A stretch of DNA of 64,000 nt from Haliotis cracherodii (taxonomy: Eukaryota): the NCBI RefSeq assembly GCF_022045235.1, contig NW_027266319.1:16864001-16928000 (forward strand), written 5' to 3'. The position numbers were made by a program, and so were the translations under genes. Positions 2,134-59,233 of the stretch are shown in pieces. Every line of letters starts with the position of its first letter. Positions within the stretch are counted from its first letter, which is position 1. The notes below the pieces were generated by a model. That model did not search any database, was not told the origin of the DNA, and was given only the letters and a program-made list of their open reading frames with translations.

Positions 2134-2190
2134 GTCGACCTAGCAACCAGCTCCCGTAATAGCGTCCCTGGCGACGTGCAGTGGTATAAA
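2134..2190 (+). promoter_or_regulatory. copy 1 core promoter: X-box-like sites plus TATA
   Basis: GTCGACCTAGCAAC (2134-2147), GCGTCCCTGGCGAC (2162-2175), TATAAA 2185-2190, about 90 nt before the ATG. Confidence 0.65.
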
Positions 2191-2276
2191 TGGGAGCGGG
2201 CCAGCTCCAGGTGCGCCACAGACCAACTCGAGCAACTTGTAGACCGACTGAGCTCCTCTCCAACACACTATACATC

Positions 2277-5244
2277 ATGGTAAGAAGAGAACCTTGCTTT
2301 CTGGTTTTCACCAAATACTTATTTGTTACAGTTTCGATTTCGGTGTGTTTGTGTTACACACATAATATATACATGCTGTGGTACGAGTTAGGATTAAATT
2401 ACTAAATTTATTACTTTTTTAGGAATTTTATTTGCACCACAGAGTATTACAATATAATATTAAGACAAAACATGTGACTTTTATACATGCATCCTTTAAG
2501 GTACATATACACGATATGTGGTATAATGAATATTTAAATTAATTATATGCATCAAATACACTTACTAGTTAATGTTAAGATGTAAGTTAGGGACAGCAAA
2601 ATTAAAAACAATAAAGAGCGATATTGAATTAAAAGGTAACAAACGATTTTCAGAAGAACTAGGCAACATAATCCATGGCATCTACCTGTACATAATAACT
2701 TCAGATTTGTTTAAAGGAATATACTATTGGAAATAAAAGAGCTCTTCTAGTCTTCACAACGGGAAGTTGTATTCAGGATGTACGACATAAGTTCGGTCAC
2801 AATAACTAAATTTTCTCAACATCTTGTTCCTTTTCTGCCTTTCCCTACTTTCGTGGATTAACTAGCTTTAATCCCTTTACTCCTTAGCACAATGAATTGT
2901 TATTGTCATATATTTAGCATAAATATCTTTGACCACATCCAACAGTTAAGATTGTTAACCTCCGCTTATTCCTTTCCCGCTTTTCCCAGTATCATCCCAA
3001 AATAACTTCATGCCAAAATCACTACAGTCTAAACAACAAAGTTAATGGTATTGTAATTCCTACCCTGTTCCCTTTATCCCGAAGTGGACTGGTATTTCAA
3101 CATACAAATGAAAAACACTCTGAATAATAAATGCAGAATGGTTTTTATGTGAACATCTCCGAGATCTCAAATTTAACTGATCTCAAATTCGTAATCATTT
3201 TTATTGCGACAACAGCGCGATGGTAATATATCTAAAATTTAAATATAAAATCATTTACAAACTCCGTAAACAGGAGATAAAAATTTACCAAAATTTGTTA
3301 TATGTGTAAATAATTGTAGAAAATCAAGTCAGATATAACAAAAGGATTAAATAGTATGCGTGCATGTGGAGTTTACCGCCGTTGCCATGGTTATGTCCAT
3401 TTCATGCAGTCGAAGATGTAACTGTCCCGATTAGGTTTTATTTATTAAAGGATTTACTGTGTAATTTTTCCTGTTCTTTGAGGCATGAATCGAAAAACTT
3501 ACGTGCAGACTGTATGAATCCACCTAGCTGATTCTTACAAAAGTTTCCGCATCCCTACTCCCTATCCCTGGACTATCCCACTACATCAGTGGGTAAGTTG
3601 CCTTTGTTGTTTTAACAAAGTGTCGTGATTATGGAGTTATTCTACTCTCAAGAAGATGATTGTGGAATTGCCAAACCGGTTCAGTTATATGAGAATCGGG
3701 TTTTTGATGAAAGTGAGCAGGAAAATGATGTGTAACTAAAACGCCTTATTTGTTTTCAGAGGGAATGTATCTCCATCCACGTCGGCCAGGCCGGAGTCCA
3801 GATGGGCAATGCATGCTGGGAGTTGTACTGTCTGGAGCACGGTATCCAGCCCGACGGTCAGATGCCCTCAGACAAGACCATCGGGGGTGGGGACGACTCC
3901 TTCAACACCTTCTTCAGCGAGACCGGGGCTGGGAAACACGTCCCCAGGGCCATCTTTGTTGACCTCGAACCAACTGTTGTGGGTGAGTGTATTGAATATT
4001 ATCTGTTTATGACCATTTTCTCAAATAATCCTAAATCTAAGTTTAGTCTGTAAAACTGAAATTTTCTAAATATACATTATTTTTGTCTTGCTCATGTGAC
4101 AACTTTGTTTCCAGATGAGGTCCGTACCGGCACCTACCGACAACTGTTCCACCCAGAGCAGCTCATCACCGGCAAGGAGGACGCCGCCAACAACTACGCC
4201 CGTGGTCACTACACCGTCGGCAAAGAAATCGTCGACCTCGTCCTTGACCGCACCAGGAAGTTGGCTGACCAGTGCACTGGACTCCAAGGCTTCCTCATCT
4301 TCCACAGCTTCGGTGGCGGCACTGGCTCCGGCTTCACCTCTCTCTTGATGGAGAGACTGTCTGTGGACTACGGCAAGAAGTCCAAGTTGGAGTTCGCTGT
4401 CTACCCAGCTCCCCAGATCTCCACTGCCGTGGTGGAGCCCTACAACTCCATCCTCACCACCCACACCACCCTGGAACATTCCGACTGCGCCTTCATGGTC
4501 GACAACGAGGCCATCTACGACATCTGCAGACGTAACCTCGATATCGAACGTCCCACCTACACCAACCTCAACCGTCTGATTGGTCAGATTGTTAGTTCCA
4601 TCACTGCCTCTCTCCGTTTCGATGGTGCCCTGAACGTGGATCTGACAGAGTTCCAGACCAACCTGGTGCCCTACCCACGTATCCACTTCCCTCTGGCTAC
4701 CTACGCTCCTGTCATCTCCGCCGAGAAGGCCTACCACGAACAGCTGTCTGTGGCCGAGATCACTAACGCTTGCTTTGAGCCCGCCAACCAGATGGTCAAA
4801 TGTGATCCCCGTCACGGCAAGTACATGGCCTGTTGCATGTTGTACCGTGGTGATGTCGTCCCTAAGGACGTCAACGCCGCCATCGCCACCATCAAGACCA
4901 AGAGAACCATCCAGTTCGTCGACTGGTGTCCCACTGGCTTCAAGGTTGGTATCAATTACCAGCCACCCACTGTTGTCCCCGGCGGTGACTTGGCCAAGGT
5001 CCAGAGAGCTGTCTGTATGTTGAGCAACACCACCGCCATCGCCGAGGCCTGGGCTCGTCTTGACCACAAGTTCGATCTGATGTACGCCAAGCGTGCCTTC
5101 GTCCACTGGTACGTGGGTGAGGGTATGGAGGAGGGAGAGTTCTCCGAGGCCCGTGAGGACTTGGCCGCTCTGGAGAAGGACTACGAGGAGGTTGGAGTGG
5201 ACTCTGTTGAGGGCGAGGGAGAGGAAGAAGGAGAGGAGTATTAG
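2277..5244 (+). CDS. TUBA: alpha-tubulin copy 1 (451 aa); exons 2277-2279, 3760-3982, 4115-5244
   Basis: ATG|GTAAGA donor at 2277-2285; tttcag|AGGGAATGT acceptor ([12 protein letters not shown]); G|GTGAGT at 3982; ccag|AT at 4115; GGGTGSG motif; ends EEEGEEY-TAG; total 1356 nt. Confidence 0.96.
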
Positions 5245-5269
5245 TGCTACCCCAAACTGACACTCAAAT

Positions 5270-56633: not shown

Positions 56634-59077
56634 CTAATACTCCTCTCCTTCTTCCTCTCCCTCGCCCTCAACAGAGTCCACTCCAACCTCCTCGTAGTCC
56701 TTTTCCAGGGCGGCCAAGTCCTCACGGGCCTCGGAGAACTCTCCCTCCTCCATACCCTCACCCACGTACCAGTGGACGAAGGCACGCTTGGCGTACATCA
56801 GATCGAACTTGTGGTCAAGACGAGCCCAGGCCTCGGCGATGGCCGTGGTGTTGCTCAGCATACAGACAGCTCTCTGGACCTTGGCCAAGTCACCGCCGGG
56901 GACGACAGTCGGTGGCTGGTAGTTGATGCCAACCTTGAAGCCAGTGGGACACCAGTCGACGAACTGGATGGTTCTCTTGGTCTTGATGGTGGCGATGGCG
57001 GCATTGACGTCCTTAGGGACGACATCACCACGGTACAACATGCAACAGGCCATGTACTTGCCGTGACGGGGATCACATTTGACCATCTGGTTGGCGGGCT
57101 CGAAGCAAGCGTTAGTGATCTCGGCCACAGACAGTTGTTCGTGGTAGGCCTTCTCGGCGGAGATGACAGGAGCGTAGGTAGCCAGAGGGAAGTGGATACG
57201 TGGGTAGGGCACCAGGTTGGTCTGGAACTCCGTCAGATCCACGTTCAGGGCACCATCGAAACGGAGAGAGGCAGTGATGGAACTGACAATCTGACCAATC
57301 AGACGGTTGAGGTTTGTGTAGGTAGGACGTTCGATATCGAGGTTACGTCTGCAGATGTCGTAGATGGCCTCGTTGTCGACCATGAAGGCACAGTCGGAAT
57401 GTTCCAGGGTGGTGTGGGTGGTCAGAATGGAGTTGTAGGGCTCTACCACGGCAGTGGAGATCTGGGGAGCTGGGTAGACAGCGAACTCCAACTTGGACTT
57501 CTTGCCGTAGTCCACAGACAGTCTCTCCATCAAGAGAGAGGTGAAACCGGATCCAGTGCCGCCACCGAAGCTGTGGAAGATGAGGAAGCCTTGGAGTCCA
57601 GTGCACTGGTCTGCCAACTTCCTGGTGCGGTCAAGAACGAGGTCGACGATCTCCTTGCCGACGGTGTAGTGGCCACGGGCGTAGTTGTTGGCAGCGTCCT
57701 CCTTGCCGGTGATGAGCTGCTCTGGGTGGAACAGTTGTCGGTAGGTGCCGGTACGGACCTCATCTGGAAGAGCAGTAAGGAATAATATGAGCAAGGAATA
57801 AAAAGAATATTCAAACAAAATCAAATGTACAGGCTGAATGTCGATTTAAGAGCATATTTCTTATGAATAGAAACGTTTTAAGGAAAGATTTAATCGAATA
57901 TTTACGATTGTTAAATATGAAATATATTGTACCCACCGACAACAGTTGGTTCGAGGTCAACAAAGATGGCCCTGGGGACGTGTTTCCCAGCCCCGGTCTC
58001 GCTGAAGAAGGTGTTGAAGGAGTCGTCCCCACCCCCGATGGTCTTGTCTGAGGGCATCTGACCGTCGGGCTGGATACCGTGCTCCAGACAGTACAACTCC
58101 CAGCATGCATTGCCCATTTGGACTCCGGCCTGGCCGACATGGATGGAGATGCATTCCCTCTGAAGATCAAAAGAAAATAAATGAAGGATTTTATTTTTTG
58201 AAGACTATTTCAGTTCATATAAAACTTATAAATATTAATTACAAGTAGACTTAATGATTGTTTAGAAACAAAAATGTAAGTATCACATTCACATGTATGT
58301 TCTATTGGTAAGTTAACAACTACATGTACGGTCTGTCCGTGAAAGTAGTCTGAAGGTATTTCTTTCATGAATTCCGGAGAAACCTTCTTTATGACGATGG
58401 CTTCCGTACCTATTTTTCTAGCAAGTTACTGACTAAGTGAATATAGTCGCCTGCAGCTTCTGTTCCTATTGCAGCAGCGATGACGAGACTGGGCATCAAG
58501 AATACCACAATGTGAGGACTGAAACCCGTGCCTTAAGTCTGACGAATGAATGGCTACCAGGCCACAAGGATAGCCATGTTACAACAGGGTGCAAGGTGTT
58601 ATGTATGTTATGTTATGTTCCCATGCACAAAATAATAATAAGATTATGAAAGATATAAACATGGCTATGTTTTCTGTGTTTGGCAAATCCCGGCATGGTT
58701 CCTGCTTGTGTTCTGGGAAAATGGTAATGATATATGATACATTCAGCCTGACGAGCTACTCGTTACCAACCAGGCTACTAAGGCACACACGTTACATCTT
58801 TCATATAAGTTTCGTCAATGGCATATCAAAAATATTCCTAAAGAAAGGTTTTAAAATGTACATATCTTGCAACTTGAAACGTGATACATGTGTACATAAG
58901 ACAGTTTTACTAATGTCGATAAGACGTTAATATTTCATCTTTCATACTTGTGAGTGTATTTTTCTACGTTGTGCGTTGTAAGGAATATGGGTTATGCTGG
59001 TGCCAAATTCTGAATTAATGCCAATGACATATGCAAGTGTTGATTTCCACTGAACACATCTACATTATAGTTACCAT
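56634..59077 (-). CDS. TUBA: alpha-tubulin copy 9 (451 aa); exons 59075-59077, 57937-58159, 56634-57763
   Basis: Intact three-exon ORF; ATG|GTAACT donor as in copy 3. Confidence 0.96.
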
Positions 59078-59164
59078 GATTGTTGTAGGTAGATGTGGAC
59101 CTCACGTGGACTGCAAGTTTTCTGGAGTGAGAAAGTCTGATGTAGAGAGCAGGTGCCCGGACAC

Positions 59165-59233
59165 TTATATACACGCACTGGACAGAAGGTTGTCAAGGAC
59201 GCTGGTCCATAGCAACTGTTGCTGAGTTCATTA
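59165..59233 (-). promoter_or_regulatory. copy 9 core promoter module plus TATA
   Basis: Module 59189-59233 including CCATAGCAAC; TATATAA 59165-59171. Confidence 0.7.

Follow-up and report, generated by a model that had tools for sequence, protein, structure and literature searches.

Ten alpha-tubulin genes in one array of Haliotis cracherodii: similar exons and 3′ ends among diverged introns and spacers

The window analyzed here, 64,000 nt of the Haliotis cracherodii genome without a single N (contig NW_027266319.1, positions 16,864,001 to 16,928,000), contains nine three-exon alpha-tubulin genes, two on the plus strand (g1 and g2) and seven on the minus strand (g3 to g9). A search of the same genome places a tenth, g10, 252 nt past the right end of the window. 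Our reading, to which we give a probability of about 0.7, is that these genes form a real, lineage-specific tandem array: it is old, and it has been maintained by purifying selection together with exchange between copies. A preliminary description of this DNA had recorded the nine genes, and nine exon-2 blocks together with nine exon-3 open reading frames (ORFs) bear it out. It was incomplete: the strands of the genes, a stop codon in g4 and the tenth gene are absent from it.

Gene structure and layout of the array

The nine exon-3 ORFs are each 376 codons long, running from DEVRTG to GEEY-stop, and 5′ of each stands an exon-2 block of 74 codons (RECIS…EPTVV). Further upstream an ATG is followed directly by GTAAG, GTAAC or GTATG, with a TATA box 88–94 nt above it. 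In the resulting gene model exon 1 comprises the 5′ untranslated region (UTR) and the ATG, exon 2 encodes residues 2–75 plus one base of codon 76, and exon 3 encodes the remainder; every intron is bounded by GT..AG, and intron 2 is in phase 1, within codon 76. The initiator Met would thus come from a one-codon exon 1 (ATG, then GTAAG), a Met-Arg junction that we infer from the sequence. Statements about the proteins were made exon by exon; exons were never joined.

Spacing from ATG to ATG is 5.6–8.3 kb, and introns range from 451 to 1480 nt (intron 1) and from 132 to 381 nt (intron 2). The tenth gene has the promoter block, exon 2 and 3′UTR of the array and occupies 64249–66889 when the numbering of the window is continued. 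There is no further tubulin ORF of at least 120 aa on either side, over 18 kb left of the window and over 20 kb past g10 on the right. The genes of the window are as follows ("majority protein" is defined in the next section):

g1, 2117–5296, plus strand: divergent promoter with TATA 2185–2190, ATG 2277–2279, exon 2 3760–3982, exon 3 4115–5244, AATAAA 5291–5296; majority protein
g2, 10264–13011, plus strand: shared promoter block with TATA 10330–10335, ATG 10424–10426, exon 2 11476–11698, exon 3 11832–12961, AATAAA 13006–13011; majority protein
g3, 17739–20144, minus strand: AATAAA 17739–17744, exon 3 17790–18919, exon 2 19069–19291, ATG 19982–19984, TATA 20073–20078; majority protein
g4, 23333–25907, minus strand: exon 3 23384–24513, exon 2 24763–24985 with in-frame TGA at codon 38 (24875–24877), ATG 25745–25747, TATA 25830–25835; otherwise majority protein
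g5, 29133–31533, minus strand: exon 3 29186–30315, exon 2 30697–30919, ATG 31371–31373, TATA 31456–31461; majority protein
g6, 35777–38642, minus strand: exon 3 35828–36957, exon 2 37338–37560, ATG 38480–38482, TATA 38571–38576; majority protein
g7, 41955–44491, minus strand: exon 3 42007–43136, exon 2 43313–43535, ATG 44329–44331, TATA 44420–44425; variant protein (I7V, V110I, Ile122)
g8, 49787–52776, minus strand: exon 3 49838–50967, exon 2 51196–51418, ATG 52614–52616, TATA-like element 52704–52710; majority protein
g9, 56583–59237, minus strand: exon 3 56634–57763, exon 2 57937–58159, ATG 59075–59077, TATA 59166–59171; majority protein

Encoded proteins

Seven genes (g1, g2, g3, g5, g6, g8 and g9) have identical residues in both coding exons and specify one 451-aa protein, as the preliminary description had stated. 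The g4 product departs from this majority protein only by the change TCA to TGA at codon 38, and that of g7 differs at three residues (I7V, V110I and T122I). Ile122 recurs in g10. In the sister cluster of five alpha-tubulin genes (C9, see below) residue 122 is Ile in four genes and Val in one; Thr122, present in eight of the ten array copies, is therefore the derived state. The two Ile122 copies, g7 and g10, are not sisters in the exon-3 tree.

Assignment to the alpha-tubulin family rests on several lines of evidence. Exon 2 matches PF00091 at 2e-16 (Pfam), and residues 76–335 match PF00091 at 1.2e-38 and PF03953 at 4.1e-29, the latter over profile positions 1–73 of 126, with residues 336–451 lying outside the query. 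Solved chains aligned 1:1 to residues 76–335 are alpha-tubulin in 60 of the 60 cases listed (E 1e-175 to 1e-153), and beta-type genes of the same genome are 38–46% identical to the array genes. Characteristic features of alpha-tubulin are the MREC N-terminus, Lys40, the GGGTGSG signature and a C-terminal EEY: all are present in the translations, the Met of MREC coming from exon 1, so that the retention of Lys40, MREC and EEY claimed earlier can be read off directly.

Synonymous divergence and islands of identity

Copies of exon 3 differ at 18–40 of about 1130 bases (18–37 of 1131 among the seven genes with identical protein), and 82 of the 88 variable sites in the nine window genes are third positions: the many synonymous differences reported earlier are indeed there. 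Among these nine genes mean synonymous divergence (dS) is 0.115 (range 0.069–0.156) and mean nonsynonymous divergence (dN) 0.0006. The pairwise dN/dS comparison that had been proposed as a check thus points to purifying selection in every copy (dN about 0, dS 0.12). Over all ten copies about 110 variable sites of synonymous type stand against three residue changes and one stop. Since dS rises to 0.28 for the nearest cluster, the five genes of C9, and to 0.43–1.2 for other paralogs, synonymous sites of the array are not frozen. Codon bias is nonetheless among the strongest of 30 paralogs, with an effective number of codons (ENC) of 35.4–37.8 in every copy and a third-position GC content of 0.73–0.75 (GC of the window about 0.35–0.51); selection on codon usage (ENC 35–38) may add to the low dS.

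Similarity between units is confined to particular segments. Median identities over the 45 pairs of ten genes, for which shuffled controls give about 0.44, are:

upstream, −760 to −161: 0.44
promoter, −160 to −1: 0.86
intron 1: 0.45
intron 2: 0.52
first 52 nt after the stop (3′UTR): 0.94
next 550 nt downstream (53–600 nt): 0.44

Because the surrounding segments are at shuffled level in most pairs, the promoter with the 5′UTR, the exons (identity about 0.975) and the 3′UTR are islands of identity. The introns had been called often unalignable, and intron 2 is clearly alignable in only seven of the 45 pairs: those within g1-g2-g3 (0.81–0.91) and g6-g7-g9 (0.76–0.85), and g4-g5 (0.64). For intron 1 the alignable group is a different one, g3-g4-g5 (0.81–0.85). 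Between g1 and g2, 97% identity extends over 1619 nt, from exon 2 through to a point 120 nt beyond the stop codon, yet their promoters and first introns are unrelated.

In a tree of exon 3 from 30 paralogs the ten array copies form one clade (ultrafast bootstrap 94) that is star-like inside, the only supported pair within it being g7 with g8 (88).

Probable exchange between copies

The ten copies of exon 3 have 95 variable sites, of which 53 are singletons and 40 informative, 36 of the latter being biallelic. In the four-gamete test 366 of the 630 pairs of biallelic sites are incompatible, as compared with 356 ± 12 when states are dealt at random per site. Pairs made up of transversions alone fail the test in 21 of 28 cases, and only seven of 28 informative transitions lie in CpG context. 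With a 100-nt window the pairwise homoplasy index (PHI) test yields p = 0.005; fitted to the maximum likelihood tree, the sites have a consistency index of 0.46. Genealogies of the different segments also conflict: in intron 2 the groups are g1-g2-g3, g6-g7-g9 and g4-g5, in intron 1 the group is g3-g4-g5, in the promoter g2 goes with g7 and g6, and in exon 3 g7 goes with g8.

We read this pattern, on sequence grounds, as the outcome of numerous exchanges that were short and took place long ago, and not of a small number of long, recent ones. Conversion limited to the functional islands probably keeps the array as one protein, beside purifying selection. In such a history the array would have originated by local duplication and one inversion, most duplications dating so far back that introns and spacers can no longer be aligned. 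Strong purifying selection on each copy and repeated short exchanges (gene conversion) would have kept the core promoter with its 5′UTR, the exons, and the 3′UTR up to the poly(A) signal alike, and the exchanges would have shuffled synonymous variants and carried the derived Thr122 into eight of the ten copies. As a result, the template for one alpha-tubulin isotype would probably be increased several-fold.

Several observations weigh against this account. No conversion tract was significant in a Sawyer-type runs test (two of 45 pairs have a pairwise p<0.05, none is significant globally), and discrete conversion tracts were accordingly rejected. Exon differences do not rise with distance in the array (Mantel r = 0.16, p = 0.18), so that a distance dependence of similarity was likewise rejected. 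Strong codon bias alone could slow synonymous change and favor parallel changes, and an apparent mosaic could also result from errors in the consensus where a region has many copies. Finally, not all copies need contribute to output, because g4 is interrupted by a stop codon and the promoter of g1 is not that of the other genes.

Promoter and 3′UTR elements

A block of 160 nt that includes the TATA box and 5′UTR is common to g2–g10. It consists, in order, of an RGYAAC/GTTRCY pair (∼−146/−139), a conserved 16-mer, the TATA box at −94/−88, an initiator-like CATCAGAC and CACGTG at −31. The last occurs at this position in eight of the ten genes; directly beside the TATA box, only four of ten have another CACGTG, and in g10 the E-box adjoining the TATA box is altered to CATGTG. 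In the 1.18-Gb genome the block has nine matches, every one in the array, and was not found elsewhere.

The exception is g1. Its −160 to −1 segment is 0.47–0.55 identical to that of the other copies (shuffles 0.44 ± 0.04), has no blastn match at E<1e-3, and retains no more than some short motifs and a TATA box placed equally far from the ATG. The claim that all genes share a promoter module thus holds for eight of the nine window genes and not for g1. The further suggestion of one cis-regulatory programme fails for g1, with its different promoter, and sequence upstream of −160 is unrelated among the copies.

The canonical X-box bound by RFX has the consensus GTNRCC N0-3 RGYAAC. No canonical site is present within −400 to the ATG of the ten genes: the best matches reach 9 of 11 defined positions, with one of 10 of 11 in g1. 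Partial matches number 4.2 per promoter as against 1.5 in shuffles, but these matches overlap one another and come from copies that are not independent. Given the absence of the canonical site, RFX control was dropped as evidence and is retained as no more than a lead.

From stop to AATAAA the 3′UTR measures 44–47 nt and is common to all ten genes, in agreement with the earlier claim of a shared element in the nine of the window; its first half occurs in two variants. A possible hairpin there has a 6-bp stem (about −5.8 kcal/mol). Changes fall mainly in the loop, with one wobble, one disruptive change and no compensatory pair, and on account of the weak stem and the missing compensation we rejected the hairpin as a demonstrated structure. 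No Rfam family was found in positions 1–18000 or 18200–64000 of the window.

Other tubulin loci in the genome

Genome-wide, 37 alpha-tubulin exon-3 matches were obtained when these were counted as single-ORF matches of at least 371 of 376 residues and at least 84% identity. They are distributed as follows:

C56 (this array): 10
C21: 8
C9 (sister cluster): 5
C2: 4
C12: 2
C1: 2
single genes: 6

The sister cluster (C9:2887815-2916594) contains five alpha-tubulin genes on one strand with an internal dS of 0.07. It has a shared promoter block and 3′UTR of its own, neither of which aligns with those of the array: similarity is at random level, without a blastn match with E below 0.1, and homology of promoter or 3′UTR between the two was rejected for this reason. 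Codon bias in C9 is the strongest of the family (ENC 34–35), C56 and C9 together being the strongest of the 30 paralogs.

On another contig, twelve beta-tubulin-type genes lie within 80 kb (C5:11991182-12071415); one sampled gene is a beta-tubulin by PDB search. It is possible that the C5 array is a partner that provides for a balanced supply of alpha- and beta-tubulin.

Repeats and flanking sequence

The two plus-strand genes meet the minus-strand genes tail to tail at a minisatellite:

14143–16134, no strand: 36-bp minisatellite, 55 copies, at the junction between g1, g2 and the minus-strand genes

At this inversion junction between g2 and g3 the repeat gives rise to long spurious ORFs on both strands. 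Related 50-bp minisatellites are found upstream of g3 (20736–21052) and g5 (32183–32665), and unrelated ones in spacers at 27618–28291 (23-bp unit), 47593–48703 (11-bp unit) and 54352–55778 (44-bp unit). Part of the 3′ end of exon 2 is repeated, as a short stretch, within intron 2 of g6 (about 37150–37195). A repeat of ∼100 nt, dispersed through introns and spacers of the array in both orientations at 85–92% identity (10486–10586, 8006–8106, 8572–8656, 27239–27339, 45448–45541 and 46674–46774), is probably a small mobile element.

To the right, 3.5–7 kb beyond the window, there is a large coding-looking minisatellite with frames of up to 879 codons and a repeated unit rich in Pro, His and Cys. 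To the left, the closest coding candidate other than tubulin lies at about 14–18 kb, an open frame of 1133 codons with C2H2 zinc-finger-like motifs.

Comparison with known systems

Arrays of histone genes and ribosomal DNA (rDNA) comprise many tandem copies of one product that evolve in concert, the whole unit including the spacer usually being homogenized. The preliminary description likened the abalone genes to these, and the likeness extends to tandem copies of one product kept alike. It ends there: histone and rDNA arrays have far higher copy numbers and homogenized spacers, whereas here only promoter, exons and UTRs are alike, spacers and introns being at 0.44–0.52 and unit length varying from 5.6 to 8.3 kb. 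Since its spacers are not homogenized, the comparison is a loose one. A study is said to deal with concerted evolution of trypanosomatid beta-tubulin paralogs, and the limpet Patella vulgata reportedly has a trochoblast alpha-tubulin gene with a short promoter, active in ciliated larval cells, which is a lead only. We found no description of this array, or of any abalone alpha-tubulin array, in the literature searched, supplementary tables and figures aside, and no mention of tubulin in two papers on abalone larvae.

Closer parallels come from tubulin genes themselves. Naegleria gruberi has about eight near-identical flagellar alpha-tubulin genes and a burst of flagellar tubulin synthesis (PMC2115128). 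As in the array, these genes are similar but not identical, and the members sequenced encode identical alpha-tubulin; unlike in Naegleria, the genes number ten, have three exons each and lie in a single array of 65 kb, and use in a burst is here only a candidate. In trypanosomatids, monotypic tandem tubulin arrays have been taken as a dosage device (PMC1621084). Near-identical tubulin genes in tandem are common to both, but the trypanosomatid arrays are polycistronic and without promoters for each gene, whereas here every unit comes with a TATA promoter and a poly(A) signal of its own, and the spacers bear no resemblance to one another.

Among molluscs, alpha-tubulin and dynein heavy chains are rapidly expanded and highly expressed in the gill of the razor clam Sinonovacula constricta (PMC7358530). 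This, too, is a molluscan alpha-tubulin expansion, and one that its authors link to ciliated gills; in the accessible text the case rests on family counts and tissue expression rather than on arrangement, protein identity or conversion. An alpha-tubulin is the top gill transcript in a mussel atlas, at 55,938 transcripts per million (TPM; PMC5549309), and in Haliotis discus hannai the genes with the strongest bias to the ovary include one alpha-tubulin, those with the strongest bias to the testis another (PMC11989308).

Alternative explanations

An inflated copy number, through uncollapsed haplotypes or misjoined repeats, is the least credible of the alternatives and hardly compatible with the sequence. 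Each unit has intron lengths of its own (451–1480 and 132–381 nt) as well as its own spacers and minisatellites, two orientations are present, and the longest match between units is the 1619 nt at 97% shared by g1 and g2. With no match above 2 kb between gene units, haplotig or assembly duplication was rejected on these grounds. It is improbable, too, that the array is a neutral by-product of a duplication-prone region, its copy number unselected and its redundant copies slowly decaying. Such a view could accommodate the nonsense codon of g4, the three substitutions of g7 and the abundance of tandem tubulin clusters in this genome, with its 37 full-length alpha-tubulin exon-3 ORFs, but it is at odds with ∼110 variable synonymous-type sites as against three residue changes and one stop, and with a codon bias kept in every copy.

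The remaining alternatives concern what the copies are for. The preliminary description proposed a dosage amplifier, and a dosage role is plausible on the indirect evidence of dN near zero against dS of 0.12, codon bias, TATA promoters, very short UTRs and the C5 beta-tubulin array. Its more specific version, a burst amplifier of axonemal tubulin for larval or gill cilia or sperm flagella under one shared cis-regulatory programme, is a tentative proposal that we would not favor at present. The promoter block of g2–g10, with its nine matches confined to the array, and the 3′UTR common to all ten genes agree with it, as do the gill expression of the expanded razor-clam family (PMC7358530), the mussel gill transcript at 55,938 TPM (PMC5549309) and the Naegleria genes that make one protein in a burst (PMC2115128). 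It has to contend with the lack of a canonical X-box in −400 to the ATG of the ten genes (best 9 of 11, one 10 of 11 in g1) and with the other promoter of g1. Moreover, in another abalone the ovary and the testis each have an enriched alpha-tubulin paralog of their own (PMC11989308), so that the tissue of the array cannot be guessed. The same sex- and tissue-biased paralogs (PMC11989308) would suit a scheme of regulatory diversification, in which one protein is made in different cells or stages by way of unrelated spacers, introns and the g1 promoter, for breadth and not for dose. Most pairs are no more alike than random sequence in intron 1 and upstream of −160, and the TATA-adjoining CACGTG is confined to four of ten genes, as this scheme might lead one to expect. 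Shared control is nevertheless suggested by nine genes whose core promoter and both UTRs have stayed alike, no enhancer came to light, and we consider diversification unlikely.

A real, old array held together by purifying selection and exchange remains the reading that we prefer. Carried to its limit, it raises the more speculative possibility, which we hold to be doubtful as a whole, that the ten paralogs behave as a population in which recombination is free: conversion would be confined to the three islands (core promoter with 5′UTR, exons and 3′UTR), introns and spacers would drift to randomness, Thr122 would have spread to eight copies, and together with the C5 beta array the genes would make up a tubulin system of high output, particular to this lineage and serving one cell type, for example larval or gill multiciliated cells. 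Among sequencing runs, the best share of the sampled words of the g3 stretch was 0.33, none containing half or more; only one row was recorded as RNA.

Significance

The array is an ordinary kind of gene amplification. Nor does it come as a surprise in tubulin biology, where gene arrays and, in molluscs, expansions of the alpha-tubulin family have been described before. The UTRs at the 5′ and 3′ ends are specific to the array and can serve as a tag for measurement of the array as a whole, while roughly 110 synonymous sites permit a copy-by-copy read-out. With ten genes that specify one alpha-tubulin from separate promoters, the array offers a clean natural case for the scaling of tubulin supply in animals, and it bears on the question of how paralogs keep identical proteins: by selection alone, or by selection together with conversion limited to islands.

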